A stretch of DNA of 63,976 nucleotides, the filler included, from Octopus bimaculoides (lineage: Eukaryota): assembly GCF_001194135.2 (NCBI RefSeq). It is 6 parts of 6 records of this genome, joined end to end, with 100 filler letters (N's around TTAATTAATTAA, not from the genome) between each part and the next. Parts side by side here need not be neighbours in the genome. Positions count along the whole stretch, not along the records: positions 21,693 to 53,238 come from NC_068982.1; 5 more parts are not named here. One strand, written 5' to 3'. The notes beneath the pieces were generated by a model. The model saw nothing but the letters and a program-made list of their open reading frames with translations. It ran no database searches and had not been told where the DNA came from. The position numbers and the translations under genes were made by a program. This document shows, one piece after another, positions 21,693 through 61,353 of this stretch; within the stretch, counting starts at the first letter, position 1, and every line of letters starts with the position of its first letter.

Positions 21693-21960
21693 AGTTACAT
21701 ACACTGAAGTTACATGCACTGAAGTTACATGCACTGAAGTTACATACACTGAAGTTACATACACTGAAGTTACATACACTGAAGTTACATACACTGAAGT
21801 TACATACACTGAAGTTACATACACTGAAGTTACAGGCACTGAAGTTACATGCACTGAAGTTACATACACTGAAGTTACATACACTGAAGTTACATGCACT
21901 GAAGTTACATGCACTGAAGTTACATACACTGAAGTTACATACACTGAAGTTACATACACT
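21693..21960. repeat. 15-bp minisatellite (gaagttacat[a/g]cact) x ~18
   Basis: Near-perfect tandem array abutting a linker gap. Confidence 0.95.
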
Positions 21961-23065
21961 GGTATCGTAGAATGACAACACACAGTATTGCTGGGTAATT
22001 TGAACTATAATATGTGGTGCACATTTTTTTTTATTAAGCATACAATGCAATTCTCGTTGAGAAAAAAATTGTTACACTATAGGTTTTTATATATCATTGG
22101 GAAAAAAACCCAGATCGGTCAAATTAGTTTCTACTACATTCCCTCACATCGAAGACCCTTTCTCTCTCATCGAAATTCGAGAAATTCAAATAAATCTGTA
22201 TGTACATTCAAATCTTGAATACTGCACTAATTTCAAATTTCAATTTCTTCACAACAGGTAGCATAAATTACATAGAGACTATCGCTTTGTAAGTGCAGTG
22301 TAAATGCTATTGTCAATGACATTGCATTCATTACGCGTGGTTATTATTAGTATTTTTTTTTTTTATAAATTCTCATTCACCCCAGCTTCGAATCACAGAA
22401 AATAATGAGTGGAACAAGTACTGATGGTGATAATAGAAATCGTCTTACTATCTCATGCTGGAAACGACTGTGAATATTGTAAAGACCAAGAATGCGACAA
22501 GAAAATGATAAACAGAGTAGATGCTTTTTATCAATGTTTCTATTGTCGCGGCACATGTAAGACACAAAGAGTACTTTATGCAATATACAAAGTAATTCTT
22601 CGTTAAGCTGTGTGTGACACTGAGCCGAAGTTGGCTCATGACTAATTTAGACTGACACATAAGCTCCACGAATATATCATGTTCGTATGTAGAGATGTTG
22701 TATCGTGATTATTCACCAAAGCGACTATTTATACGTCTTCCATTTCGTTACTATACAGGCCAATCAAACATACATCAGTCTGATTACATTTAAGATTAGT
22801 GAATAAATCAAGCAGATTATCATAAAATTAATTACAATATTACACTCGAAATTAATTCAGAGAAATGATTTAGATAGAAGATTCAGATTAAGCATCTTAT
22901 AGTAATTACTATCGTCGCTTTGCGCTTAAACTTCAAATCGAGCTGGAACTATTGTGATTACCCTGACAAACAAGTCTACAATATATTTATCAATGATCCA
23001 AGTTTTGATTTCCGTCGTTTATAAATTGTCTCTTGAAAAAAATAAATTCGATGATTATCACATTT

Positions 23066-23121
23066 CTATTGTCTAAAATATTTGATGTCTTTCACATTTC
23101 CATTTGCCAAAATATATTCTT
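23066..23121 (-). CDS. Candidate terminal coding exon after exon B (E-EYILANGNVKDIKYFRQ*)
   Basis: Acceptor cactatttcag|AA is phase-1 compatible and lies 364 bp downstream of the exon B donor. Confidence 0.3.
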
Positions 23122-23485
23122 CTGAAATAGTGTTTTTCCAAACTTCTGACAAAAATAATATAACAGTGTTGTTGTTAATGAAAACTAAAGATACACTGAG
23201 GTTTAAAGAATGATTAGTAGTGATCATGACACGCGCTTTTTATTTTCATCCATTCAACGATCCCCTTAACCGATTTATAAATAGAGAAGACAATACATAC
23301 AATATTACAACATTCAATTTGTGCATTTTAACGGCAATACAAGCATGATGCTACTGTAACAAAATTACTCAAGGAAAGCAGTTTTGAAATTCATGGATAT
23401 AGTTAAGCTATTTATTTATAGTTGTTTTTCTAATCTGAATATTGGATGCAATCGAGCACTTTCAACAGCAAATATAAATACCTAC

Positions 23486-23611
23486 CATATTCTTCTATAT
23501 CCCAGGAAGGAAAGGCTACACTCTTATTAATCTTGCAACGCAAAACAAGACAAGTTTTCTTCGTCAACCTTTTCGAGCCAACAGGATAACACCCATGCTT
23601 ATACTTACAAC
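23486..23611 (-). CDS. Internal coding exon B (126 nt, phase 1-1) encoding a 4-Cys module GCKYKHGCYPVGSKRLTKKTCLVLRCKINKSVAFPSWDIEEY
   Basis: Minus strand reads ttttcttttgtttgtag|GT TGT ... TAT G|gtaggt. C1/C7/Y8/G11/C20/C25, the aromatic at 33 and W35/36 align with exon A. Confidence 0.8.
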
Positions 23612-25768
23612 CTACAAACAAAAGAAAATCATTGCAATAATTGTAAGAGAAACTATTCACAATTATGTCAAGATATTGTTCCCATATTAAATATATGAAG
23701 CATACGATATTTACTCAGATATACACAAAGTAAATAACATTTAAAATTTCAATGGTGTTTACTTCTTAATGCGTTTTACACTCCTGTAAACATAACAATT
23801 CGTTCCACATCTTTGAGGGATGTATTCGTACGTACGCACGTACGCACGGACGTTCAATGGTTGATTAGCTGCATATTTGATATCTTTACAGATCTTTTTT
23901 TAATTGAAATCCTCAACATTAATAAGGCAAAATTAGTAATCAGCAGAATGTATCTCGCCAAGCCATTGGAGCTCCAAGTGGCATTTGTTTCAGCTTGCCA
24001 CCAGACTACAAGTAAAGATGAGACTCATTACTGCAAACTTTGTATACAGTACGAGGTGCAAAACATGTAACTTGGTCTCAAATTTTTATTTTGAAGTAAT
24101 CCTTGTCTCTTGCTTGTATGAGCACGCGATGTTTCTCCTACAGCCCTCGAATGGATATTCCCAACAGATGTAGCAGAAGTGATTTTGGCCATTGCGACAT
24201 ACACGCTATGAAAATCGAAGCAAATTGAAGTGAAGAAATCAAAGCAGTCCACAGTGGACAGAGCAATTACCAATTTGATTGTCACAATAACATCCGAGAC
24301 TCGCATTACGTCAAAGTATTCTAAGAATAGTTATGATCTAAAATGTGCTATAGCTACAATTAAAGCGGTCTTATTAAATAATCACAGGTATTCTAAAAGG
24401 ACAAATAGGATCACATTACATGCTGCATTCTACATTACATTTCTGTAAATTTGGCATATAATGGGTATCTTGTATATGAAAATCTTGATGTGATGGAGCA
24501 AAACTGAATGGCATTTTCAGAAAGAGCACCTTAAAATTAACTAAAATCATCGTCAATATCTCTTGCTATAGAAACCTTTTTTTTAAAAAAACATGTGAAT
24601 TATATTTGGTTTCAAAATGTTGAAAATCATTGCAAAAATATGAAAATTTGATATAAACTACCTCTATGGTTATAAGCTAATGCAATTTACCGTATTGAAT
24701 TTCATACTTTTACCCAAGAAAATGTCTAAAAAATTAATGAGTCCTTCATTCGAATTTGTGCTTATATTACATGCTTTAATTCACTAAAAGCATTTTTCCT
24801 GAATATGCACTGCTGAAACTGGAGTGCGACCAATATGCCTGAGCGTCTTTTATGTCATCAAATCCATAAGAAAAGGAAATTTCTTGATAATGGTCTAAGT
24901 ATTTATATTTCAAGATATGCCGAAGTTTTGCGATCGTATTTTGCAAGGCACATCAAACCTTAGTTTACAAAGAGAAAAATTAATCTGCATCATATTATTA
25001 CATTCGCACATTATTCGAGTAGATATTTTTTCAACTTTCGGTACTTTGTTGGTACCTGTTAAACTTTCGTTATGTTGACGCATGATATTTTAACAGCAGA
25101 CTGATGACTAATTATTAATATAAAAGTTCCTCATCATTATTCACCTTGATAGCATGAATCATTACCAAGCGTTCAGTCGAGAATCTAGGCATCGTATGTA
25201 TTCATCGCAGTAAGATAATTTCCTTTACACATTAGTACAAATTAGCAAGACAAAAAATTTATCGATTTTATAGCACAATTCTTTCTCCATTGAATGGATA
25301 TTTCATTTTACTTCAACAAATAAATAACTACAGACATTTATTCAGAAAATCTTATTAAAAGAAAGTAATTTGAGCATTGAACAAAATTGTGAATACGATA
25401 TCCTACGTAGTAGCAGTTAACCACAATTAAATTATTACCAGACTATTAATATCATTGAGGCATTATCACATATGATAGCTAGGGCATATTGACTAAGCGT
25501 ATTCTTATTTATGTATCTATATAGTTTTAATAACTGAAACTATTCATCATTCTTCACGAGGATTTGTTTCTGAGTATCTATGTGCCAAATTCATCATACA
25601 GTAAAGCAAGGTCAGAAATTTCTATTTGTAAGCTAAAAATGTCTGATTAAAGTCAACCAAAATAAAGGGAGTTTTATTACTGTATTAGAAACATTAGTTG
25701 AGATTCACAAACCTTTGAGCATCGAAAAAGGTGCTTTACGGTAATCAGTTATCATTAGTTTCGGCCAT

Positions 25769-25985
25769 AAGGCGACGAGCTGTCAGAATTGTTAGCATGC
25801 CGGGCAAAATCCTTCGCGGTATTTCGCCTGTCTTTACGTTCTGAGTTCGAATTCCGCCGGAGCTGACTTTGCCTTACATCTTTCAGGGTCGATAAATCAA
25901 GTACCAGTGAAACACTGGGATCGATGTAATCGGCTGGTCCCCTCCGACTAAAATTTCAGGCCATGTGCCTATAGTCGAAAGGATT
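25769..25985 (+). mobile_element. SINE family B with 15-bp target-site duplication
   Basis: TSD attagtttcggccat at 25754-25768 and 25986-26000. Confidence 0.9.
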
Positions 25986-26599
25986 ATTAGTTTCGGCCAT
26001 TACTTTCTTATTTTTAATCATACGGAATACAATTTAACATTTCTCTTCGTTAGAATCTATGAAATACATACCAGCGAGGTATTGAGATTGTCGTAGTGAA
26101 CAATTTACTAGTTTTTTGTGCTTCTGTCAGAATTAATCTTTATAAGGTCTGTTGTACCTGAAACATACTTCATCTAAATACAAGCAACACAGGGAAATTT
26201 TTACGTGTTACATTTCTTATAAATGTTAGGAAAGTCGAGTGAAAACATCGAATCCTATACGTAACAGAAATATAAAGAAAATACAGAAAGTTGTAATTTA
26301 GAGAAGCATCATTATAAATGTATACATTTCACTAATTCAATTACATATTACTATTGTTCTTTAGCTACTGGTAAACATTGATCGAACATAACTATGATGA
26401 AAGATATTTCAACAGTAATTAAGTCTAATAGTTGCCTGTCGAAGAATATATTGTCAAATACGTACTTCAGTTTTTTGTTCATTGGTAGTGGTAGAGAGTA
26501 TATAACTTTGATAACTTTGATAGGTTTCGGCCAGTATGGGCCCAGACCATGTCTAACTTAATAGCACCTCTTGCTGAAGTCTTTTAGTCATACATGAGG

Positions 26600-26941
26600 C
26601 ACCATGGCCCACTCTAGCAAAGAGTTATTATTGTTGGAGACATATCCGGGTGTAGGAGGTTGGTCCGGGATTTTTTGAAGATATTTCTCCAGTGAACGTT
26701 TGAATTTTATGGCATCCGTTTTGACGTATTTTGGTATGGTATTAAAGATAGCTGACCAGTTGAGGTGAAGTAATTGTGACGCAATATTGCTATGTGTACC
26801 GAATTCGATTTTTGTAGTGGGCGGATAGCATGGGGGCCAAGTCTTGGATGGATTTCAAAATTGATGCCAACATCATTTGTGCAATACTGATGGAATATTT
26901 TCCAAATCATACAAATGAGTAGCGCTTCCGGCGGTGTTGGA

Positions 26942-26942
<1 letters not shown>
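26600..26942 (-). mobile_element. CR1-group LINE 3' ORF fragment
   Basis: Minus frames RRKRY..IWKIFHQYCTND...HPRLGP...KFKRSLEKYLQKIPDQPPTPGY, homologous to the copy at 27240. Confidence 0.7.
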
Positions 26943-26983
<41 letters not shown>

Positions 26984-27239
26984 NNNNNNNNNNATATACA
27001 ACTTGTGTATGTATGTATGTATATATGTGTGTGTGTTTGTGTGCGTATGCATGTATATATATATACACACACACACACATATATATATAAATAATTAGAA
27101 AATTGAGAACAAATTTGATTAACCAGTACATCGATAGGACCGCATTTAAAGGTTAAATAAACTTTAAAGGTGGTCCTATCAATGTACTGGTTAATCTATG
27201 ATTTTTTTCCATTTTTTAGATTATTTGCATTGGTTCCTG

Positions 27240-28260
27240 ATTTTTTTTTGATGCGGTCATGCTGATGATGCACCGCCATTTTGCTACACTTTTATTACTG
27301 AGCTATTCCTCCGACATGTGGCACTTGGTGAAGAATGGAGTTTGATATAGCTACCCTCATCTGCACCTCTTGCCGTGAGGTAGGTTCATCTGGGACTCTC
27401 GACAGGAAGAGGTCCAGCTTTGAATTAAAAACGCCTACATCTACTTTTTGCAGGTTCCTAAGGCTTTTTGGAAGAATATTAAAAAGCTGTGCGCCCCTGA
27501 AACTCAGGATGTTGCAGTAAATGGTTCTGAAGCATGATGGCGTTGCTGGGATCTTTGGCACTATGCAGTGTCGTCCCGTTTGGGCATTGCTGTAGCTTTC
27601 AATGCCAAAATTTGGCACAATACTTTCCAGGATCTTCCAGATGTATATTATAGCATACCTCTCCCATCTTTGCTCCAGGGAGTAGAGTCTTAGCTGTTTC
27701 AGCCTTTTCTCAGTAGCTGAGCAGTTGCAAAGAGATGATCTTCCTTGTGAATCTTCTCTAGATTACTTCAAAGTCCGCTGTTAATTTCACACTGGTGGGT
27801 GACCATAGCTACGAGCAGTAATCCAGGCGTCTGAGAACGAATTCCTCTGGAGAACCATCATGGCTTCCTTCTCTCTGGTTCTGAATGTTCTCAAGATCCA
27901 TCCAGCCAGTCATCTGCACTTTGTCGCCATCCTGGTAATGTGCACAGGGAAAGAGGTATCATCACTCATGTCAATACCCAGGCCCCTCACTGATTTCGGC
28001 TCTGGGATTGAAATTCCTTGTGGACCAGTGTACTCTGTAAGTTTCATATTCAGTTTTGGACGCTATAGCGCAGGGCTTGGAATTTTTCAGCATTCAACTG
28101 CATATTATTATCCTCAGCCCATCTGTAAACTGAGTCCAACTCTTGCTGCAGATGTGCTGACCACCAAAGTTCTTGATAGAAACAGATCACAAGCCTATAC
28201 TACCACTGCTAAAAACTCCAAGAATCCAGATTTGATTTGACTCCAAGAATCTAGCGTTTC
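27240..28260 (-). mobile_element. CR1-group LINE, RT C-terminus to 3' end, decayed
   Basis: HLQQELDSVYRWAEDNNMQLNAEKFQALRY...LAGWILRTF...LRLYSLEQRWERYAIIYIWKILE...LFNILPKSLRN...LDLFLSRVPDEP; A-rich tail at ~27241-27249. Confidence 0.85.
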
Positions 28261-28289
28261 CGCATGCGCCTAATGAGATTCACCTATGA

Positions 28290-29740
28290 GATCACACACA
28301 CTGCAGGATAAACCTCATTACAGCAAATATCCTATCCAGGGCTCCTGGCAGAATACCAACGAAACAAGAGTTCCAGCAGGAGACAGAGTCAGACATGTTC
28401 ATCCGTACTATCATAGAGAACATCTCCGTGAGTGACAAACGACTGGAGGAAATCAGGCAGAAACAAGACACTAATAAAATCCGTGGTCAAATTATCAACT
28501 TCTACAAGATGGACCACTGGCCTGAAGCAGTCACACAATATCTTACTGGTTTGTACGGCAGTACCTAACAGTTTATCAGGGACTCTTACTGTATCAGAGC
28601 CGACTCATCATCCCCGCAGACCTCCAGAAAGACATCTTGGATCGTCTACACGAAGGATACCAAGGTATCGTCAAATGCCAACACTGGCGTGAGACAATGT
28701 TTGGTGGTCAGGTTTTTCCAAGCAAATTGCTGAGAACATAGGAGGGTGTAGTATCTGTGAGAAGGAAAAGAAATATCCACCAGAACCACTACGACCTACC
28801 GAGTTACCTGACTTTCCATGGCAGAAGGTAGGAATGGACTTGTTCGAATTGAAAAGACACAGATATCTATTAGTCATTGACTACTATTCTAGATGGATAG
28901 AGTTATCTCATCTACAGACAACAATATCAAGCATTATCGTTGACAACTGCAAATCAATATTTGCTAGATATGGTATACCGGAGGTTGTCATTTCGGATAA
29001 TGGTTCTCAATTCATATTGAAGGAGTTCTGGGATTTTTCAAATGTTTTTGGCTTTTTACACCTCGCCAGTCGTCTCCATTATCCACAAGGAAACGGAGAA
29101 GCTGAGCGTGCAGTTCAGATAGGTAAAAACTTTCTAAAAAAAGAAGAAAAGCAAATGATCCATATATCGCAGTGCTTAATTATCGCATTACTCCACTACA
29201 ACATGGCAAGAGTCCTGAAGAGTTGTTGATGAACAGGAAACTCAGGAGTTGCATTCCAACAATTTCTTATAAAAATGTATCCTGCCAAGAAAATGTTGAG
29301 CAACACAAAAATGCACTCTCAGCTCAAATTGAAACAATAAGTCAATTTCGACAAACGTCATTGAGTATCTTTTACTGAAGAACAGCCAGTTTGGGTGAAG
29401 ACACCTAAAACCAGTCCAGCCAAAGTGGTGAAACCTATCACCAAGGTCAATACTTGTCGAGGCAGATTCAGGACTACTTCGACGAATCAGAAGCCATCTT
29501 CGCAATAGAAGTGAGAAAACCAAGTTTCCTCAGGTAGCTACTCCAATAGAATTGTCCATCTTACCAACCACACCCAGAAATGTTCCCGAGTACAGCCGCG
29601 ATATTTCAGCAGAACATCTCACCGAACAAATTGACCAAACAAAGACCCAGTTCCCTGCGCACAGGGATGTCCCTGTGTTGACAAATCGGGAATTACCAAG
29701 CCGGCAGTGTACACTAAGAGTGAACTCATAACCTGAAAGG
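28290..29740 (+). mobile_element. Ty3/Gypsy pol remnant (RNase H end, zinc-binding region, rve integrase)
   Basis: ILSRAP; LDRLHEGYQG..C; PWQKVGMDLFE...VIDYYSRW...FARYGIPEVVISDNGSQF...YPQGNGEAERAV; frameshifts and stops. Confidence 0.92.
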
Positions 29741-29744
29741 GGGA

Positions 29745-29934
29745 TCTCGTGTTATCTCCATTAGATTAGTCACCGACCATTACGTGGACTCTCTAGTTTA
29801 AAAGAACACATTCGTTTCCCTAATAGGAAGAGCCCATTACTGTGTATGCTTTGCTAATAAACGGGCATATCTTATCGCACGCTGAATTCTCTTTCTGTTT
29901 ATTAACCAATATCGTCAACGTTCATTATACCACA
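29745..29934 (+). repeat. Probable 3' LTR of the Gypsy remnant
   Basis: Polypurine tract aaaggggga just upstream, internal AATAAA, ends in CA; no matching 5' LTR in the window. Confidence 0.5.
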
Positions 29935-30447
29935 CATGCATGTATGTATGTTTGTATTCATATGTGTACGTGTGTGCATATGTACATATATTTGTATGTG
30001 TGTCTACGTGTGCACGTGCGCGCATATATCTGTATGTTTGTATATATATATATATATATATATATATNNNNNNNNNNNNNNNNNNNNNNNNNNNNNNNNN
30101 NNNNNNNNNNNNNNNNNNNNNNNNNNNNNNNNNNNNNNNNNNNNNNNNNNNNNNNNNNNNNNNNNNNNNNNNNNNNNNNNNNNNNNNNNNNNNNNNNNNN
30201 NNNNNNNNNNNNNNNNNNNNNNNNNNNNNNNNNNNNNNNNNNNNNNNNNNNNNNNNNNNNNNNNNNNNNNNNNNNNNNNNNNNNNNNNNNNNNNNNNNNN
30301 NNNNNNNNNNNNNNNNNNNNNNNNNNNNNNNNNNNNNNNNNNNNNNNNNNNNNNNNNNNNNNNNNNNNNNNNNNNNNNNNNNNNNNNNNNNNNNNNNNNN
30401 NNNNNNNNNNNNNNNNNNNNNNNNNNNNNNNNNNNNNNNNNNNNNNA

Positions 30448-30632
30448 ATTCACTAAAAAAACAACAGACGAGGACAGGTGGTGTAAACAACAAAAGGATG
30501 TATTAGTTTAACGCTCGGGAATAGAGAAAGTCTTTAACGTTTCGAGCTACGCTCTTCAACAGAAAGAATACGGAGAAAACAAGGAGAAAATCACGGAGAA
30601 AAAAAAAATTGAATGTGTTGGTCAGCGATCTA
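30448..30632 (-). mobile_element. Penelope-like element terminal repeat fragment
   Basis: Reverse-complement homolog of 36318-36510; contains a hammerhead-like motif. Confidence 0.6.
30532..30566 (-). ncRNA. Minimal type I hammerhead-like motif (CUGUUGA core variant)
   Basis: Minus strand: cttt CTGTTGA a gagc gta gctc GAAA CGTT aaag; stem I cttt/aaag, stem II gagc/gctc, palindromic ACGT stem III. Confidence 0.5.
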
Positions 30633-30642
30633 TCATGGTGAC

Positions 30643-30679
<37 letters not shown>

Positions 30680-31314
30680 CTTGCGTGTGTGAGTATTTGT
30701 GCGTGTATCTGTGTGTGTATGTGTGTGTCCAAACATGGGTATGTATATAAATGTATATGTGTGTGGGGGCATGTATGTGTACGTATTGGCGTATATAAAT
30801 GTAGATATAGACAAAATGATGTACGTGTACATGTAAGCCATCAAACTAAAAGACCAGTGAATTCTTATAGATCAGCCAAGTACAATCGAAAGTGTAGCCT
30901 ACTATGATGAATAAATCAACACTACAAAGTAATCAAATGCCAATGCCTTTAAAACGGCAGTCCCTTTAATAGCAAAACTATTTAATAGCAAAACCACCAT
31001 CCCACTAAATCCATTTCTTCAATGCAGTTTACCAACAGACTTTCACCCGCAACACGTCTCTTGATACACTCAGTGGCTACTACTAACTTGTATGCCGCGT
31101 CAGACGGATAGGATGCGCCTGAAGCTGAGAATTTGATTTTATGGAGACGATATTTATATATCACAAGGAAACACAACTGGATCTCATAATGCAGGGAAAC
31201 GGTTACATAACCAAATACCTGCAAGCATGGAGAATTACTCTGCGCGGAAACAATTGTAAATATCTAACCGTCCTCCTTCCTGTTGACTCCAACTTTTTCA
31301 AAATTTATATATAT

Positions 31315-31350
31315 ATTAGCAGCTAAGCCCGATTTCACCCGGTTGGTTTT
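31315..31350 (-). mobile_element. Possible Helitron-type 3' terminus of a non-autonomous element
   Basis: Minus strand: accgggtgaaatcgggc weak hairpin, then ctgctaata (CTRR-like) inserted in (TA)n. Confidence 0.3.
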
Positions 31351-32106
31351 GATGATGTGGCTGTGAAACCTGCTCTGTGTAAGCATTCGACTTGTTTGGG
31401 CACACTTCCGTTAAAAAACAATTTTAGAATGACTTTTTTCTGTCAAAACGCTAAAAATAACTGACCAAAAAAAAAAACCAACCAAGATTCAACCAAATCA
31501 AAAAATAAATGCAAATATTAAGCGAACAAAGATGAACCATCTCACTTCCGTTGCGTGCACACACACACACACACNNNNNNNNNNNNNNNNNNNNNNNNNN
31601 NNNNNNNNNNNNNNNNNNNNNNNNNNNNNNNNNNNNNNNNNNNNNNNNNNNNNNNNNNNNNNNNNNNNNNNNNNNNNNNNNNNNNNNNNNNNNNNNNNNN
31701 NNNNNNNNNNNNNNNNNNNNNNNNNNNNNNNNNNNNNNNNNNNNNNNNNNNNNNNNNNNNNNNNNNNNNNNNNNNNNNNNNNNNNNNNNNNNNNNNNNNN
31801 NNNNNNNNNNNNNNNNNNNNNNNNNNNNNNNNNNNNNNNNNNNNNNNNNNNNNNNNNNNNNNNNNNNNNNNNNNNNNNNNNNNNNNNNNNNNNNNNNNNN
31901 NNNNNNNNNNNNNNNNNNNNNNNNNNNNNNNNNNNNNNNNNNNNNNNNNNNNNNNNNNNNNNNNNGAATCGCCCATGTCAAATTTATATGTCTGTAGTTC
32001 ATTGTTCTAACGTCCTGTACCCTGATATGCATCTATATACACATGTAGATGTAAGTATATACATATATGTGTGTATACATGCATATATATTCTTTGTATT
32101 ATATAT

Positions 32107-32152
<46 letters not shown>

Positions 32153-32239
32153 AACAATAAAACCAAGTCGTAGCAAAAACGAAAAAAAGGCACAACAGAT
32201 GATAATCGTAACGTCAAAACTGATAATATCGGACGAATC

Positions 32240-34075
32240 CTAATCATACCATATAGTGCTCATCAGTCAGAACTATTTCACCTTCGGATCCTCCTTCAAC
32301 ATATGCGACCAGCTTTGATGAACTGAAGACCGTGGAGGGAAATGCATGTTCAACATTTCAGGAGGCCTGCAAGAAAACTGGTCTGATATCGGACGACCAA
32401 AAAATACACCGTGCAATGGGGGAAGCAGCTAGTATTCGCTTCGGAGATTCGCTACGCGACTTCTTCGCCATCATGTTTATTTACTGCCGGCCACCTGATC
32501 CGATGAACTTTCGGGAAGAATGAAAAACTGAACCAGGACGAAACCTCATGCAAAGAAACAACATTAAAGCTCTTACCTCTCGCATTGAAAATAAAATATT
32601 GATTCGTCTGCAGGAGCGAATGCAAAGAGATAAACTTGACCTGGTTCGAAATTTCCCACTGCCTCAACCTGAATATAACGAAACTAATCAACTGATACCA
32701 AAGATTATCGCAGAAGAATGTAACTATAACACAGAGTGCCTTCGAATAGTGTCTACAGACATCTACAATACTCTAAATATTGACCAAAAGCACAACTTTC
32801 ATATGGTTGTAAACTCAGTTTTACAAAAGGAAAACAAGGTTTTCGCCTTAAGCGCGAATGGTGGAACTAGCAAAACATATCTTATCAAGGCCATCGTAGA
32901 TTTTCTACGTTCGGAGAAAAAAACAATCGTACTCGCCACAGCTCTGTTTGATATTGTGGCAACATTGCTGCACAATGACCGGATATTTCATTCTTGGTTC
33001 AATGTGCCTATAAACATAATACCGGACTCCTGCTGCAATGTGTCATCTCAGGATGCAACTGCACAACTCTTCAGAATGACCAGTCTATGAAGTCAGCCAA
33101 GGCGACAGGCTCATATACGAATACTTGGATCGTTTCCTACGCAACTCTGTTTGGAGGAGTATTGGTTCTTTTTGTAGGCGACAGGAAGCAGATTCTACCT
33201 GTTGTTAAACGTGGTGGTCGAGCCCAAATAGAGCAAGCCACTTTGAAAACTTCGTAAATCTGGAGGTCTTTGACGGAGTTGAGTCTAAAGAAAAACATGA
33301 GGGTACGAAATTCATCAGATGCAACTTTAGCAACCTATTTAAGCGACATCGGTTCCGAACAATGTCCGTTCTCCGACCCACTGAAGAATGTGATTCAAAT
33401 TTGGCTAGAATCCAAATTCGTCTTTAATGATTTAAGTGAAAACTACAAAATCGTATCATAGCTGTGTTCACAAGCTGTCAACGCCTCAACCAATGAAGAG
33501 GTAAACAGTGTGAATGAGCATATGATTAGCAACTTCCCTCGGGAAAGTCGAGAGTACTGTAGTTCAGATACAACAGCTGACGAAAATTACCACCACTACC
33601 CACAGGATTTCTTGAACCACTTAAATCCATCGGGATTGCCACTCCATAAAATTCAATTGAAAAAGAACTGTCCGATAATGTTCCTTATGAATCTTGATCC
33701 AAGCAATGGACATTGCAGTGGAACGAGATACAAGGTACCAGAACTAAATTCCAAGGTTATTGAAGCAGTGATTGCAACTGGCCCCCACAATGGTAAACGC
33801 CTGTTCATTCCGCAGATACCCCTTATACCAACCGATAACCAGTTTTCGTTCCAATTAAGACGCAGGCAGTCTCCTATGTAACTGGCATTCTCATCTACAG
33901 CAAACAAGGCACAGGGCCATACTTAAGATCGTGTAGGTGTACTTTTACCGACTCCAATGTTTACACGCGGCCAGTTATACGTCGCTATGCGTACAGCACG
34001 GACTCCAGTAACTTGAAAATTAGTGTTGACCCAACACAAAAGAATGTCTACAAAGAAGTTTTGCAATCATATTGA
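32240..34075 (+). mobile_element. Helitron RepHel PIF1-type helicase, decayed
   Basis: SFDELKTVEG..CSTFQEAC; ANGGTSKTYL (Walker A remnant); VGDRKQILPVV; PSGLPLHKIQLKKNCPIM..NLDPSNGHCSGTR; RRRQSP...NKAQG...FTRGQLYVA; many stops and frameshifts. Confidence 0.92.
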
Positions 34076-34193
34076 TATTAAAATCCATTTACATATTTTT
34101 CAGTACATACTGTTGATATGATTTTCGTCCCTCGTTTTATGCCTTCATCGTAGATGGATGGATTTGAGGATGATGATGATGATGATGATGATG

Positions 34194-34232
<39 letters not shown>

Positions 34233-34393
34233 TATAATATATAATAATAATATATATTATATAATATATTAATAATATATTTTTTGGCTCCATGCGATGT
34301 CTTTATTTCCGATGTTTTTGGATAAGTTTCGGAGCAGTGATTTATCGTTCTCACATGTTAAACTTCCTCGGTGTTCTCTCCTTATTCCTGAAC

Positions 34394-34467
<74 letters not shown>

Positions 34468-34469
<2 letters not shown>

Positions 34470-34950
34470 GCCCTGATGCAGTACCAGGCAGTGGCTCTCA
34501 TGGCTTCTGATGTTAATTGATTGGATGTGTTATCATGTACATTGTTTTGTCTTGGTATAAAAGATGGGCTACAGCAAATATTCTGCTTAATACTACAGAT
34601 TTGTTGTCAATTATTTGATCTTAACTATTTGTGCATGTCCCTTAGTGTTTGACGATATGTGCATCTCTGATCACGAGCAGAGGTACTGGGGAAGCATCAT
34701 AGCCATGTGTTGAGAGGAATCCTTTGGGGTTCGAATAATTTACCTTTGGAAAGTTGGGTGTTTTGTTCATCATCCTTAAACAAACCATACAGGGACCTTT
34801 CGAGTTGAAGAAAATTTTAACAGGGCCCCACCTGGAAGGTTATGCGCTGTTAATCTTGACATGAGATCATCTTGTCGCGCACATATGGCTGTCATGAACA
34901 TGCCCGGTGTATCTTTATCAGGCGGATAGTCATGATGGGTATATTGGGTT
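34468..34950 (+). mobile_element. ~560-bp AAT-flanked non-autonomous interspersed element (unclassified), 3'-truncated copy
   Basis: Starts atgccctgatgcagtaccaggcagtggctctcatggc right after (AAT)n; homologous to 43573 and 44717. Confidence 0.85.
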
Positions 34951-36150
34951 TCGTATATGTTGTTTCTGGTTGCCAAGTCCTCGCTGTAAAGGAGTACCTC
35001 ATAAGACATGACAGACTAGGGTAGTACAACCACTAGAATGCTTGTAAATACTACAAAATTAAATCCCATGATAAATGGTACAGGCACCATCCAGAGGATG
35101 TTGTAAATAGCAAGGGCGTCACCGTCCTTTGGAACTTCCCAATATAGATAGACAAAAAAATTTACTCCAATTGACCAGACATTATCAGAAAAACTTATCT
35201 GTTAATTGATATGTCTGTCCCACAGATCAAAAATGTCTCAAGAAAGGAATACAAAAATCTTTCTTACAACAAAGATCTGCAAATTGAAATCGCAAAAATG
35301 TGGAAGTTTGGTACTATGATAATACCAGTAGTAATTGGTACATTGGGAATGATAAAGAAGGGAGTTGAGAAATATATTAAGCAATTTCCTGGTAACTCCA
35401 GTCTCCGTGAGCTACAAAAGATAACCTTGATGGATACAGCCCATTTACTACAGAAAACACTCTTCATCTAAAATAGAATAAATGCGGTGATAGTTTTAGC
35501 AAAAATAGCAAAACAAAAGTGCCCTCGCTACTCTTGGCCTCCGGTGGATACCTGGTAATACGGCAGCTGAAATAAAATTATAATGAAAGGAAACCATAAA
35601 TGATAAAAAGAGAAAAGATTGATAAATATCGAGACCTGAGAATCGAGATCGATAAGATGTGGCAGCTACGAGAGTCAAACATAAAGGGTATCCCTATTGC
35701 CAACGGAGCATTGGGTTCAATGCCACCCAATCTGAAAAAAATATATCTAAAAACTTTAGAAATATACTACCAGCCCTGAGAGGAATCGATAGAAGAACCT
35801 GATTGAAAGCTAAAGAGAGACATTGAAATAAGATAGAGAAATGCTAATTATATCCCATCAAACAGTACAAAACTGATAAAGCAATCATCGACAAAAGTCA
35901 GTTAGACATCAAATGTAAGATGTATAAGAAAGAGAAAAAAATATCAACCATTTTCAGCGTGAGTGCAGGACAGTAGCACAATAGAAGTATGAAAGCAGAC
36001 ATGACTGTTTAGGTAAAAGAATGCATTGGGATGTTAACCGAGTACGTGGCTTCACAACAACAGAAAACTAGTATGAACACGAACCACAGTCTGTGATAGA
36101 AAATTAGTATTAAGACATCTTGAGAAACTTCCCCATAAAGACTAGACATA

Positions 36151-36746
36151 TAGGTGCAGAAGTGACTGTGTGGTAAGTAGCTTGCTTACGAACCACATGG
36201 TTCCGGGTTCAGTCCCACTGCGTGGCACTTTGACCAAGTGTCTTCTACTATAGCCTCGAGCCGACTAAAGCCTTGTGAGTGGATTTTGGCTGACAGAAAC
36301 TGAAAGAAGCCCGTCGTATATATAAATAGATCGCTAACCACTAAATCTTTTTTATTATTTTCTCTCCCTGTTTATCTCTGTGTCCCTTTCTGTCGAAGAG
36401 CGTAGGCTCGAAACGTAAAAGACTGTCTCACTTCCCGAGCGCTAAACTAAGACATATGTTTGTTGTTTACGCACCCGTCTTCGTCTTTTATTTTTTGTAA
36501 ATTCTCACTATGTGCGTGTGTGTGTGTTTGTGTGTCTGTGTTTGTCCCCCCACCATCGCTTGACAACCGATGCTGGCGTGTTTACGTCCCCGTATCTTAG
36601 CGGTTCGGCAAAAAGATTCGATAGAATAAGTACTAGCCTTACAAAGAATAAGTCCTAGAGTCGCTTTGCTCGACTAAAGACGGTAATCCAGCATGGCTGC
36701 AATCAAATGACTGACACAAGTAAAAGAATAGAAAAATAAAAGAATA
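36151..36746 (+). mobile_element. SINE family A with a nested Penelope-like fragment (36318-36510)
   Basis: Full head and tail present; the internal microsatellite position is occupied by a sequence homologous to 30448-30632. Confidence 0.85.
36386..36421 (+). ncRNA. Minimal type I hammerhead-like motif (CUGUCGA core variant)
   Basis: cttt CTGTCGA a gagc gtag gctc GAAA CGTA aaag; GUA cleavage triplet. Confidence 0.55.
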
Positions 36747-37355
36747 CTAATTAAGTAAGAAGATCAGATATGCTGATAGAGGACAAACTAAACAAATACT
36801 ATAAGATTACAGAGTTTGCAATTCCCTACAATAGCAGAGGTAATACCAAAGAAATAATTGAGAGATATCAGGATCTAGCTCGAGAGCTGAGGAAACTGTA
36901 GAAGAACTAAACAACAATTATTCCTTGCCTCCCACGTTGGGATAGTGATTAAGTAGATTACATCGAAGTTCAAGTAGTACTTAATTTATTGACCTGTAAA
37001 AGGAGGAATGGCAAAGTCAACCTCTGGGACTAAATCGTATTTGGAAACTATCGTACAAAAGATATGAACTTATGATGAACTTATGTATACATAAATTGAT
37101 TAGTAAAATGTCCGACATCATGTTTGAATAATGAAAATTCTAGAAATATACAATATCTTTTCCGTAACTTTTATCTTCGACGTAGTTTGCTAAGCTAGAC
37201 ATCTGCACAACAACAGAGTCATGCAATCAAACAAAATCAACATAAGCTGCGGAATTTCCAAGAGGTCTTTCATTCACCTCTCTTGCTTTATAAATATTCT
37301 TCCATTTACTTGTGAACCGAATAATACAGAGGGCGACTACGAATTACAATACAAT

Positions 37356-37444
<89 letters not shown>

Positions 37445-39102
37445 CTGTCTGTCTGTCTATCTATATCTCTCTCTCTCTATATATATATATCTGTCTGTCT
37501 GTTTATTTGTCTGTCTGTCTGTCTATATATCAATCTATATATATATATGTATATATATATGTGTGTGTGTATATATATACACACATACACACACACACAC
37601 ATATATATATATACAAAGAAAATAGAGAGATAATTAAATTAATAATTATCTATTAATTATAAAATTGGACATCATCTCTGACAGCTATTTCGGTTCAAGA
37701 CTTTAGAAATTGATTAACATAATTTAAAACATATTAAACCTGAATCTCATCAGAGTTGGCTAAAAATATGTCATTACATTTTCATGTTCCACTGTATACG
37801 GCTCCAAACCGTTAATTGATAAATGCTATATAGAAAGAACATGGTATGGACCCTATAAAGCGAAGAGAGGTAGTATATTTATCGAAGTAATTACAAAAAT
37901 AAAGAATATGATATGATATTAAAACAATATATCTCTCTAGAGTATTAAATGAAAGAAATTGTGAAGGTGGTTATAAGAATGTGATAGCAGTATATCATAA
38001 ATAATTAACATTATTATTGTTGTTGTTGGCGATCCTATGACCGTGAGTCCGCTGCTCTAACCACTGGGCCATTGCGCCTCCAGTTAACATTATAGATAAG
38101 CAGTATCTAAAATTAATATAATATTATAGTATTATAGTGAACTAATAAAAATACATTCCTTTAGGTGCATTACAACATATAAATACAATAGAGATCAAAT
38201 AAAAATGCAAGATGATATAAATAAAATAAAGTAATAAGATAATGAAAAGTAAAGAATATATTATTGAATAGACAAGTGAGAATTTGTTTTTATGTAAGTA
38301 TAAACATAAAACAGAAGACAACACGCATCTATATACGAAATATAATTAATTAGTTAATTATATGCAAAAGACATGCTAAAAAGTCGGAATTCATTTAAAA
38401 ACAAGATGGAGGTGGGAGAATAATAATATAATTAGGAATTTATGTAATTATATAAGTTAGAAGCTTCTCATTGAAGTAACATAGTCAAATTAAGGCTTAT
38501 ATGATAAAATGCAATATTTGCTATTGAAAACATTAAAAATATAGGTTGTTATCAATACAATTAAATAAAAAGTTTGATAAACAAATTAACAAGAAAAAGA
38601 AAAAAAAATGCGATTCAGATTCCTAATATAGTGTATATTGAGATAATTTACAATCAAAGGGAGGTTAGTAAAATACATGAAATTAATGAAATTAAGTGAC
38701 TAGTATGAGTTGGTTGGATGTTTTAGAGCAGATAAACTTTGTTACAGCATATACAAAGGTTTAAAATTATGGACAGGCAGAAATAGATACGAATGGGCAG
38801 GGAAGAAAGAGGAAGAATTCCATATCAATTGATCAATATATCATTACTTCATATTTCAATATGTCAATATATCAATATAGAGCGAGAAGATGTGGGAAAC
38901 AAATATATAAGTTAATTTAATAATAAATAATTTTTTAAAAAATGTATATATGTATAGAAATGAATGAATAAATAAATAAATAAACAAAAAAGCAATTAAA
39001 TAAAGGTAATAAGATGGCTTGATAAGAAAATATAAATCACCATTCTATAAGATGGGTGAAAGGTATAATGTAAGTAGAAAAAAGTGTATAACGGTCTAAA
39101 AT

Positions 39103-39426
39103 GATGAGTTGTTGGCACTTCGTCGTTTACGAGGTCGAGGGTTCCAGTTGATTTGATCAACGGAACAGCCTGCTCGTGAAATTAACGTGCAAGTGGCTGA
39201 GCACTCCACAGATACGTGTACCCTTAACGTAGTTCTCGGGGATATTCAGCGTGACACAGTGTGACAAGGCTGACCCTTTGAATTACAGGCACAACAAAAA
39301 CAGTGAGAGAAAGTTGTGGTGAAAGAGTACAGCAGGGTTCGCCACCATCCCCTGCCGGAGCCTCGTGGACGTTTAGGTGTTTTCGCTCAATAAACACTCA
39401 CAACGCCCGGTCTGGGAATCGAAACC
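39103..39426 (-). mobile_element. tRNA-derived SINE family C (OK-like), truncated by a gap
   Basis: High identity to 60969-61353. Confidence 0.85.
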
Positions 39427-39726
39427 NNNNNNNNNNNNNNNNNNNNNNNNNNNNNNNNNNNNNNNNNNNNNNNNNNNNNNNNNNNNNNNNNNNNNNNNNN
39501 NNNNNNNNNNNNNNNNNNNNNNNNNNNNNNNNNNNNNNNNNNNNNNNNNNNNNNNNNNNNNNNNNNNNNNNNNNNNNNNNNNNNNNNNNNNNNNNNNNNN
39601 NNNNNNNNNNNNNNNNNNNNNNNNNNNNNNNNNNNNNNNNNNNNNNNNNNNNNNNNNNNNNNNNNNNNNNNNNNNNNTGTAGATGTGTAGACTAGACTGC
39701 TGATACCAGTCAATATGGTATTTTCT

Positions 39727-39755
39727 TCATCTCCTACTCTTGTTTTTGTACACAT
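39727..39755 (-). CDS. Candidate terminal coding exon after exon A (D-VYKNKSRR*)
   Basis: Acceptor cattttgtag|AT is phase-1 compatible and lies 432 bp downstream of the exon A donor. Short enough to be chance. Confidence 0.3.
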
Positions 39756-40187
39756 CTACAAAATGACTTTCTAAAATGAACTTCCATTATGCAGCTGAGG
39801 AGTACATTTTCATTGCACATCTTATGTGGTGTTCTCACTACATAAATAAATGAAGTTTGTACGAAACGTACGTACTGCTATAATCTGATGAATTATTGTT
39901 GCTTTTCTTCATATTTTATTCACCAAATCTCTTGATTTTGTTATTGGTTTTTATCCTACCAAATGCTGGTGCCTCAAACATTTTAAGTACCACATTTAAT
40001 CTTTTGATTAAATTTATATTATTATCATAATTTATATAGAGAGAGAAAAATTGGGCGGAGGGAGAAGCAGAGAGAGAGAGGGGGAGATAGAGAGAGGGGA
40101 GAGAGAATGAGGGATACAGAGAAATAGAGAGGGGGTAGCGGGAGAGGGAGACAGAGAGAAATAATGTAAAGTAATATTTTAACATAC

Positions 40188-40310
40188 CGGCATGTGTGGT
40201 TTCCCACTCATATCTTCTATCTCCTAAATTAGTGCAGGTATGTTTAACACAGTCATTTTTATCGTCAATTGTCCGACCAGCTGTATAGCATATACCATTC
40301 ATAAAACATC
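40188..40310 (-). CDS. Internal coding exon A (123 nt, phase 1-1) encoding a 4-Cys module GCFMNGICYTAGRTIDDKNDCVKHTCTNLGDRRYEWETTHA; probable secreted disulfide-rich protein
   Basis: Minus strand reads tttttatttgtaacttctag|GA TGT ... GCC G|gtatgt. Open frame, length divisible by 3, same Cys spacing as exon B at 23486-23611. Confidence 0.8.
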
Positions 40311-40656
40311 CTAGAAGTTACAAATAAAAACATTTTGTTTTAATCAAAAACTATTGGTTGGGGAGTATAGAATTCTTTTCGAAAAGATTACATCCGTGTA
40401 TTTTCATTTACATTTACTTAAGATAAAAATACTTATTATGCTACTTCTGATGTCAATGTCCCGGTATAATTACAGGGACGTTGATGGTGCTTTACAATCG
40501 AATAAGAGAAAATGGGAAATCAATGTTCGTATCCAGTTGGGCCATGTGTAGATTTCACACATTCACACACATCCGCAAACAGCGCTCACACAAAGTCGCA
40601 TACGCAGACACATATATATTTATAGCTGGACACACACGCATACGCGCCCACACACT

Positions 40657-40705
<49 letters not shown>

Positions 40706-41081
40706 ACACATATATAGATTCCACCACAGTTGACTTAGCCCTTCATTATTTCGAGGTGAATAAAATAAGTATTAGTTGTCTACAAAGCTCAACATATTCG
40801 ACTTAAACCATCCATTGAAATTGCAATCCTCGTTCTAAAATTTCGAACCAATATACATTATGTATGTAATATTTTCTGAGGATTAATGGCCTAGCGGTCA
40901 TAAGATCATGATTTCAATTCCTAGACCATCTGGTGCCTGGTGTTCATCAGCAAAACACTTGACCTCACGTTGCTCCGCAACCACTTCGACGCCTGATGCG
41001 CGGTACATCATGTACCTGTTCAGGCAACATCGGGTTTGAGGAGGAGAGAGATAAAGTAGTAGAGAGAAAAAGAGGTAGAGG

Positions 41082-41112
<31 letters not shown>

Positions 41113-52968: not shown

Positions 52969-53238
52969 ATGGACACCCTAGATGTTATAATCGAAAACCA
53001 TTGTGGAAAGGCTGATAAGGATGGAGAGGAGGAAAAGGAAAAGGAAAAGGAAAAAACACCCGGAAGTCTCTCTGACCCAGTGGCTCCTCAAAAGAATGGA
53101 TCACCCACACCTATGAACAACCAGGCAGAAAAGGATAGTGGAGCCAAGGAAGCAGCAAATAGAAGCCCCTCTGTGCCAGTGGTCCTACAAAGGAAAGGAG
53201 CCCTCACCCCAATAGATAACCAGTGGAAAATAGTACCC
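52969..53238 (+). mobile_element. Probable LINE ORF1 low-complexity fragment, cut by a gap
   Basis: Open frame MDTLD...EEEKEKEKEK...QWKIVP, composition typical of ORF1 tails; no diagnostic domain. Confidence 0.35.
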
Positions 53239-60968: not shown

Positions 60969-61353
60969 ATTGTTGTTGTTGGTACTCCGTCGCTTACGAC
61001 GTTGAGGGTTCCAGTTGATCCGATCAACGGAACAGCCTGCTCGTGAAATTAACGTGCAAGTGGCTGAGCACTCCACAGACATGTGTACCCTTAATGTAGT
61101 TCTCGGGGATATTCAGCATGACACAGTGTGACAAGGCTGACCCTTTGAATTACAGGCACAACAGAAACAGGAAGTGAGAGAAAGCTGTGGCGAAAGAGTA
61201 CAGTAGGGTTCACCACCATCCCCTGCTGGAGCCTCGTGGAGCTTTTAAGTGTTTTCGCTCTATAAACACTCACAATGCCCGATCTGGGAATTGAAACCGC
61301 GATCCTCTGACCGCAAGTCCGCTGCCCTAACCACTGGGCCATTGCGCCTCCAC
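60969..61353 (-). mobile_element. tRNA-derived SINE family C (OK-like), full length
   Basis: Minus head gtggaggcgcaatggcccagtggttagggcagcggac...ggtttcaattccc (A and B boxes); (aac)n tail. Confidence 0.9.

Follow-up and report, generated by a model that had tools for sequence, protein, structure and literature searches.

Tandem four-cysteine modules of an uncharacterized Octopus bimaculoides protein: a molluscan module family with a probable fibronectin type I-like fold

We analyzed a 63,976-nucleotide stretch of Octopus bimaculoides DNA (assembly GCF_001194135.2; hereafter the window) and, within it, the 31.5-kb piece from NC_068982.1 at positions 21,693 to 53,238. In this piece, two minus-strand exons, here called A and B, had been described from the sequence alone as homologous cassettes that encode an unassigned four-cysteine module. 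The two are coding exons 4 and 5 of the nine that make up LOC106869870; they are spliced directly to each other and encode modules 2 and 3 of the six tandem modules of its 282-residue product. Overall, the best explanation, and in our judgement a moderately likely one, is that this product is a secreted six-module array of fingers similar to those of the fibronectin type I (FN1) and VWC domains, acting as a matrix, mucus or adhesive-type binding protein. The gene itself is already known from RefSeq and UniProt. What is new is an FN1-like mollusc module that has no Pfam model and in which one disulfide pair would be rewired.

Exons A and B in the gene LOC106869870

Exon A (123 nt) is bordered by the acceptor ...tttttatttgtaacttctag/GA and the donor CCG/gtatgt and encodes the peptide (G)CFMNGICYTAGRTIDDKNDCVKHTCTNLGDRRYEWETTHA(G). 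Exon B (126 nt) is bordered by the acceptor ...ttttcttttgtttgtag/GT and the donor ATG/gtaggt and encodes (G)CKYKHGCYPVGSKRLTKKTCLVLRCKINKSVAFPSWDIEEY(G). Both acceptors are of the polypyrimidine-AG type, both exons are in phase 1 at either end, and the codon formed at the A-B junction (g+gt) specifies Gly. The peptides have in common the spacing C-x5-C-x12-C-x4-C, Y8, G11, an aromatic residue at position 33 and W35/W36, and carry net charges of -1 (A) and +6 (B). A six-frame search of the 31.5-kb piece finds the exact Cys pattern at only two places, namely exons A and B, while 0.025 occurrences are expected per mononucleotide shuffle (200 shuffles, maximum 1); the observed number is 80-fold above chance. 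Outside the Cys residues, the two peptides share 8 identities over 26 positions (E 0.013 in a pairwise test), and a DNA alignment of the exons with their flanks gives no sign of recent duplication.

The protein, XP_014771277.1 (UniProt A0A0L8HM43; 282 aa), is listed as an "uncharacterized protein", with the same sequence under its RefSeq and UniProt/GenBank accessions. It was the top match (E 4.8e-61) in a full HMMER scan of 1.84 billion representative proteins, in which the 84-aa concatenated A+B peptide served as the query, and query residues 1-84 are contiguous with protein residues 81-164. Using tblastn, exon A (residues 81-122) and exon B (residues 122-164) each match the protein with 100% identity. 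Read together with the minus-strand sequence, these matches bear out the exon boundaries, splice sites, phases and lengths of the preliminary description exactly, as well as its proposal that A and B are joined in frame; the Cys spacing, Y8, G11, aromatic residue and W35/36 that it listed are likewise present in both peptides. The homology that it claimed for the two exons is supported as well. The gene itself, on the other hand, was already on record, annotated as uncharacterized.

Nine coding exons with AG/GT borders rebuild the 282-aa protein exactly, and the gene spans 64.6 kb of an 84.6-kb locus (L001). In order, these exons encode a signal peptide, a 20-residue piece with one Cys, six modules, and an 8-nt terminal piece consisting of Q, C and the stop codon. 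The six module exons are all 111-126 nt long and in phase 1-1, with one module each, and every internal exon of the gene is in phase 1-1. Accordingly, the protein contains six tandem modules of about 40 aa with the spacing C-x5-C-x10-12-C-x4-C, followed by a C-terminal Cys. Exons A and B are found at L001 positions 44405-44527 and 61104-61229, respectively (window position = 84715 - L001 position), and score 35.1 and 38.9 bits against a hidden Markov model (HMM) built from 89 modules of the family. We therefore hold the gene structure as modelled with high confidence, and exons A and B are most likely consecutive, constitutive-looking module exons. A single product is on record for LOC106869870, and the sole hint of alternative exon use is that paralogs from Octopus sinensis are on record as isoforms X2 and X3.

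No module exon beyond the six known ones was found when the module HMM was run in six frames over the sequenced part of the 84.6-kb locus, or when the piece was scanned for Cys-rich open reading frames (ORFs) flanked by AG...GT. A weak module-like ORF (YKDGRNKIRHENKCYTGKCQKS; L001 7177-7242, plus strand; 13.7 bits, E 0.006 with the module HMM) is situated beyond the piece, some 2.8 kb upstream of the start codon (ATG), and may be a relic of another module or of a neighbouring paralog.

With a mass of about 29 kDa, the protein is basic, the net charges of its modules summing to +16. Lone Cys residues are found at position 25, in the N-terminal hairpin piece, and at position 282, and the mature protein has 26 Cys. 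The signal-peptide exon and the six four-Cys modules agree with the secreted, disulfide-rich product that had been proposed, and the protein is presumably secreted. Literature searches by accession, locus name and descriptive terms returned no paper in the library searched on LOC106869870 or its family, and neither appears in a paper on limpet adhesive (PMC7333891).

A family of four-cysteine modules in molluscs

The HMMER scan with the A+B peptide found nine proteins in total. Besides XP_014771277.1, they come at E values from 3.7e-21 to 1.3e-5 from Argopecten (XP_069114568.1), O. sinensis (two genes; XP_029648495.1 and XP_036354653.1), Ylistrum (XP_060063141.1), Patella (KAK6173882.1 and XP_050416036.1) and Pinctada (KAK3086679.1), together with one sequence-read-archive transcript that has no known species. 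All relatives with a species name are molluscan. Judging from these sequences, the modules constitute an unnamed family whose relatives are found in molluscs only.

The family unit is 34-46 aa long, arranged in tandem, and usually has a G at its end before the next C; exons A and B both fit this description. All four Cys are kept in 135 of 154 aligned module copies. Almost all departures from four Cys are partial alignments, and disulfide pairs are not inferable from modules that have lost a Cys. Across 89 non-redundant modules no residue other than the four Cys is invariant, and the commonest spacing is 5/12/4. All 93 modules collected with the pattern C-x(4-6)-C-x(7-14)-C-x4-C fall within these limits of spacing.

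The O. sinensis proteins resemble XP_014771277.1 in their whole architecture (signal peptide, one-Cys hairpin, modules and terminal Cys), but have five modules instead of six. The first module is 44-53% identical outside the Cys residues across the three octopus proteins, while the inner modules, including A and B, have only 10-30% non-Cys identity to everything else. The divergence between A and B, for which hypervariable loops in a diversifying family had been suggested, is one between old paralogous modules. The N-terminal piece has one Cys in XP_029648495.1 and two in XP_036354653.1, and a lone Cys is the last or near-last residue. XP_036354653.1 has an odd number of Cys (23 after the signal peptide, if an upstream MCVCVCV extension is ignored). 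These Cys residues outside the modules, and their numbers, suggest that the molecule closes into a ring or is linked to others.

The bivalve and limpet relatives differ from the octopus protein in size and module number. They are 800-1,700 aa long (Argopecten, 920; Patella, 1,208; Ylistrum, 1,495; Pinctada, 1,709), and no function has been studied in any of them. Counted with the module HMM, the octopus proteins have 5-6 copies; the remaining proteins have 9-29, and the large ones from bivalves and limpet 16-29. A VWA domain heads the Ylistrum (E 1.7e-31) and Pinctada (E 1.1e-29) proteins and is followed by 25-29 modules. Relatives appear in databases as "G surface protein-like", "prestalk protein" or "extracellular matrix protein A", names that were assigned automatically by similarity.

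Two further observations concern the large relatives. The last modules of the Patella, Argopecten and Pinctada giants have five Cys, with a C-x-C...C ending like that of canonical FN1 (e.g. CRYGGECFSPGVKWVNANGLQCTCYRGLGPVC). These could be a bridge between the mollusc family and FN1; the five-Cys modules have no match to Pfam fn1, and score 1.5-6.9 bits against an HMM of five Fn1 sequences (see below). In addition, the 38-position Pfam profile DUF7210 reaches 25.5 bits against a cut-off of 27 on the Argopecten protein by summing short matches to C-Y-K-I-G-D hairpins, and is also weak on the Ylistrum protein (P0005) and on family member P0006. Word-index homology searches with the 84-aa A+B peptide, the full protein or the 89-module alignment returned nothing useful.

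Relation to FN1 and VWC domains and rival explanations

Structure prediction with AlphaFold2 (AF2) gave a single-module model for exon A with a predicted local distance difference test score (pLDDT) of 91.4 and strands at residues 2-3, 6-7, 13-16, 21-29 and 32-39. In the full-length model (pLDDT 83.6) there are five strands per module, and residues 1-18 are disordered, as expected of a signal peptide. When the full model was compared with the PDB using Foldseek, the leading matches were fibronectin FnI6-FnII-FnI7-9 (E 3e-5, probability 1.00) and FnI7-9 (E 6.4e-4, probability 1.00), followed by the VWC-containing NEL (2.9e-3), 3mql (5.5e-3), and the FnI2-3 and FnI8-9 pairs (probability 0.97-0.99). 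The FnI crystal structures 3mql, 3gxe and 3ejh are among the matches, and all other matches are low-probability beta-propellers. On these models, the module probably has a finger fold of the FN1 or VWC N-terminal-subdomain type, i.e. a variant of that fold. The novel module put forward in the preliminary description is probably not a new fold, given that the full models match fibronectin type I arrays.

FN1 modules are found in fibronectin, tPA and factor XII; they have four Cys, joined in disulfides 1-3 and 2-4, and each is encoded by one symmetric phase 1-1 exon. Their fold, a two-stranded sheet on a three-stranded sheet in about 45 residues, is present in the predicted structure of the mollusc module. 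The module also resembles FN1 in its size (about 40-45 residues), in the predicted A-B hairpin and C-D-E sheet, in having its first Cys at the start of strand A, in the C-x6-[YF]-x2-G-x2-W motif of strands B/C as far as its Trp is kept (see below), in its tandem arrays, and in the layout of one module per phase 1-1 exon. For reference we used the human fibronectin modules 1-5F1, with sequences checked against PDB chains. The C-x6-Y-x2-G-x2-W spacing is the same as in 1F1 and 3F1, and exon A has the L-G-x-x-[RK]-x-E-W turn into strand E (CTNLGDRRYEW vs. CVCLGNGKGEW in 3F1, BLASTP E 0.027). FN1 modules conserve an aromatic residue in strand B and a Trp in strand C (C-x6-8-[LFY]-x5-[FYW], as in 1F1 and 3F1). 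Both exons have Y8; at the Trp position exon A has I, exon B has R, and many bivalve modules have W (e.g. CEYKDKCYKIGANW). With the HMM built from the five Fn1 sequences, one Pinctada module is aligned end to end (20.1 bits, E 2.6e-6 among 89) and exon A scores 5.9 bits; in the alignment, module Cys 1 and 4 fall on FN1 Cys 1 and 2.

The VWC N-terminal subdomain is itself FN1-like in structure. The likeness of the module to VWC and SVWC (PF00093 and PF15430; Vago-type) lies in the N-terminal C..G..Y..G..W...C part, and NEL was the third Foldseek match. VWC domains differ in having 8-10 Cys, the C2xxC3xC4 and C8C9xxC10 motifs and a C-terminal subdomain, whereas the module has four Cys and none of these; each four-Cys unit is a complete exon and is predicted to fold confidently as a domain alone. 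The only Pfam match of exon A is to SVWC (13.9 bits against a cut-off of 27; profile positions 1-31 of 66). Among the 89 single modules the matches below threshold were to SVWC (5), VWC (2), Fn1_2 (2), FnI_RECK (1; E 4.7e-5) and VWC2L_C (1), the remaining weak matches being scattered, single or double, over unrelated families. Those to SVWC reach 13.8-15.1 bits against 27 (positions 1-33 of 66) and those to VWC 14.4 against 27.6 (positions 1-27 of 57), both below the gathering score; wherever coordinates were seen, only the N-terminal half of these profiles is covered. Fn1_2 (PF23003) matches four stretches of the Ylistrum protein (E 0.002; 18.7 against 27 bits) and also matches P0006. The likeness to Fn1_2 and FnI_RECK (PF25028) is confined to weak matches, which for Fn1_2 are below the gathering score, and neither family matches the octopus protein.

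Several results weigh against a relation to FN1. The Cys pattern of FN1 is C-x~25-C-x-C-x~9-C, compared with C-x5-C-x10-12-C-x4-C in the module, which lacks both the C-x-C motif and the Cys of strand E. FN1 Cys 3 and 4 are absent, and new Cys residues are found beside the strand-B aromatic residue and in the C-D loop; thus, the FN1 disulfide pattern is impossible in the module. No Pfam family reaches its gathering score for the exon peptides, the nine family proteins or the 89 single modules, and XP_014771277.1 has no Pfam match. Pfam fn1 (PF00039) gave no match, at E values up to 10, for the exon peptides, for the nine proteins (P0001-P0009), or among 25 of the 26 families listed for the 89 modules. 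A sequence profile search of the PDB with the module alignment was empty, and hhalign assigned the 89-module profile a probability of 14.8% against fibronectin 1-5F1, over 15 columns that cover only the G-x-x-Y-x-x-G-x-x-W hairpin. The alignments supplied to AF2 were self-assembled from module copies of only eight proteins. The TM-scores of the full model are low (0.24-0.44), because the angles between modules differ. Finally, with the single 41-residue module as the Foldseek query, no match was below E = 1, and FnI pairs were in the top ten with CsrA beside them; it should be noted that a 41-residue query is without power in this search. The Pfam results leave the module unassigned, as originally described, and the early impression of a VWC/FN1-like start combined with an ill-fitting CY placement and C-x4-C spacing agrees with the weak SVWC, VWC and FN1-type matches and the different Cys pattern.

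These results bear directly on the possibility that the module represents a small, disulfide-rich beta fold or family of its own, new and independent, that has come to look like FN1 by convergence only. Small beta-hairpin domains converge easily, and the different Cys pattern, the profile searches without a match at threshold and the non-significant single-module Foldseek search are all in its favour. Nonetheless, we consider it unlikely, since the independent weak family matches, beside scattered unrelated ones and CsrA, are mostly of FN1/VWC type, and both the C-x6-Y-x2-G-x2-W spacing and the layout of one module per phase 1-1 exon are shared with verified FN1 modules. That the finger is a variant of the FN1/VWC type is distinct from true homology with these domains, for which we see about even chances. 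FN1, a building block of the extracellular matrix, is described as specific to chordates or for the most part restricted to them (Hynes 2012, PMC3308698), whereas the present module is found in molluscs.

As modelled, the proposed finger would consist of two beta layers, with the A-B hairpin packed on the C-D-E sheet as in FN1 and the N-terminal VWC/SVWC subdomain. Both putative disulfides would connect the region of the A-B hairpin with the C-D loop and strand D, and none would reach strand E. The chain would resemble beads on a string, a rod-like extracellular array in which rigid beta modules, locked by disulfides, present variable surfaces on a constant scaffold. The lone Cys at either end may serve to close the molecule or to join several of them end to end. 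Partners of FN1 arrays are bound by beta-strand addition, and growth factors are ligands of VWC domains; by analogy, ligands might be engaged via exposed beta-strand edges.

The assignment to a functional class is more tentative. The likeliest role, at somewhat less than even odds, is that of a secreted matrix, mucus or adhesive-type binding protein, on the basis of the analogy with FN1/VWC arrays and the relatives that combine VWA with dozens of modules. These bivalve relatives favour the matrix-type option among the functions guessed at earlier, and leave the toxin and protease inhibitor options less favoured. A secreted effector, such as a cytokine-like or immune protein of the Vago type, an antimicrobial, or a salivary or venom protein, would suit a small, basic (+16), Cys-rich, secreted product with weak SVWC matches and several divergent octopus paralogs; we regard this as quite improbable, as SVWC reaches about 14 of the required 27 bits over half of the domain only, and the relatives in bivalves and limpets are giants with many modules, two of them with a VWA domain, of a kind typical of matrix.

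The protein is a computational prediction and its exons are found amid transposon remnants, which raises the question of whether the exons are non-functional ORFs: they might be artefacts of gene modelling, pseudo-exons or remnants of a C2H2 zinc finger that has decayed. For the latter, a phmmer search against the PDB matched PRDM9 arrays at E 0.0011, a score that is an artefact of summing over repeats (E 74-140 per finger). The ligand pattern C-x2-4-C-x12-H-x3-5-H is absent: in exon A, which lacks C-x2-C...H-x3-H, the second Cys is replaced by A and the second His by N, and exon B does not match. Against an artefact in general, the splice sites are canonical and of matching phase, the Cys pattern occurs 80-fold above chance, the six ordered module exons give a full ORF with signal peptide and stop, and homologs of like architecture exist in a second octopus and in further classes of molluscs. 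Hence, we regard both an artefact and a decayed zinc finger as all but excluded.

The surrounding locus and implications

The piece is identical base for base, including its runs of N, to L001 31477-63022 (reverse strand), which derives from the chromosome-level sequence CM046602.1 of GCA_001194135.2. The features located in it are listed in Table 1. The exon of module 1 lies outside the piece, behind a gap of 5,064 N, and that of module 4 also lies outside, behind a gap of 2,011 N.

Table 1. Features of the 31.5-kb piece, in window coordinates.
Feature	Position	Strand	Basis or content
Coding exon 4 (A), module 2	40188..40310	-	Sequence, splice sites, tblastn, exact gene model, AF2 pLDDT 91.4
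Coding exon 5 (B), module 3	23486..23611	-	Sequence, splice sites, tblastn, exact gene model
Intron 4, 16,576 nt	23612..40187	-	Between A and B; four gaps, microsatellites, transposon remnants; no more module-like ORF
Intron 3, 3' part	40311..53238	-	Whole intron about 23.3 kb; gap 43811-44242 and dispersed repeats
Intron 5, 5' part	21693..23485	-	Whole intron about 4.6 kb; minisatellite at the 21693-21961 end
rve integrase core fragment, stop-free ORF	28693-29226	+	Pfam rve E 1.2e-10; within intron 4, antisense to the gene
PIF1-like helicase and Pif1 2B domain	32257-33878	+	E 4.4e-21 and E 1.7e-12; intron 4; split over several ORFs/frames; PIF1-helicase/Helitron-like ORFs at 32524-33878

The four gaps of the A-B intron are at 26984-26993, 30068-30446, 31575-31965 and 39427-39677, and that of the upstream intron is at 43811-44242. 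Neither exon meets a gap; therefore, the continuity of the exon frames across gaps is not at stake. The public assembly has the same gaps as the piece, and one of the 251-391-N gaps in the intron might hide an extra exon. Three of the four gaps in intron 4 adjoin (TA)n or (CA)n microsatellites, tracts of a type that is the usual cause of assembly breaks.

The introns of the piece are rich in repeats, as is typical of octopus DNA. Two transposon-related sequences are found in intron 4. By its sequence match, the rve fragment appears to be a retroelement or transposon remnant, and the helicase region looks like a decayed Helitron-type element. At the edge of the piece, a minisatellite of 15 bp (AGTTACATACACTGA; 17.9 copies, 96% matches) adjoins the 2,011-N gap; on the minus strand it yields long ORFs rich in Cys (CNFSV repeats), which are spurious. 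An element of 173-199 nt is present three times (42444-42616, 44243-44415 and 44442-44614; 98% and 84% identity), two of the copies being in tandem directly beside the gap at 43811-44242; this short repeat, interspersed or tandem, probably caused the assembly to break. A dispersed repeat of 239 nt (35912-36150 and 51240-51478) is 89% identical between copies 15.3 kb apart, and similar ORF-like sequence with microsatellites is found about 1.2 kb downstream of each, which suggests that they are parts of two copies of a larger element. Near the other end of the piece, a 129-nt inverted repeat (52134-52262 and 52352-52480; arms 93% complementary and 89 nt apart) and a 160-nt direct repeat (52257-52416 and 52727-52886; 93%) overlap, a structure that is like a miniature inverted-repeat transposable element or a foldback element. 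Two long stop-free ORFs, 45840-46493 (plus strand) and 47587-48078 (minus strand), had no Pfam match at E <= 0.01 and resemble, by eye, C- and N-terminal parts, respectively, of ORF2 of a non-long-terminal-repeat retrotransposon. Rfam and tRNA scans of the piece returned nothing.

Beyond the moderately likely account given at the outset, a more far-reaching version can be formulated, to which we assign a rather low probability: the module would be ancient and mollusc-wide, possibly lophotrochozoan-wide, and homologous to FN1/VWC with rewired disulfides, and the small octopus proteins of 5-6 modules, with their conserved free Cys at either end, would form a secreted head-to-tail disulfide polymer (a fibre or gel of mucus, sucker, egg-case or the like), the phase 1-1 exons allowing the number of modules to be varied by exon skipping. 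If true homology with a rewired disulfide pair holds, the FN1-type finger would not be a chordate invention, and the mollusc module would be a protostome relative, or an intermediate to the VWC N-terminal subdomain, with which the origin of the fold may be traced. For the octopus genome the gain is modest, in that an annotated "uncharacterized protein" receives a domain description and a testable hypothesis. For the family as a whole, a domain model and a name would become available for dozens of unassigned repeats in matrix-type proteins of pearl oyster, scallop and limpet, animals that are studied for the biology of shell, byssus and adhesives.

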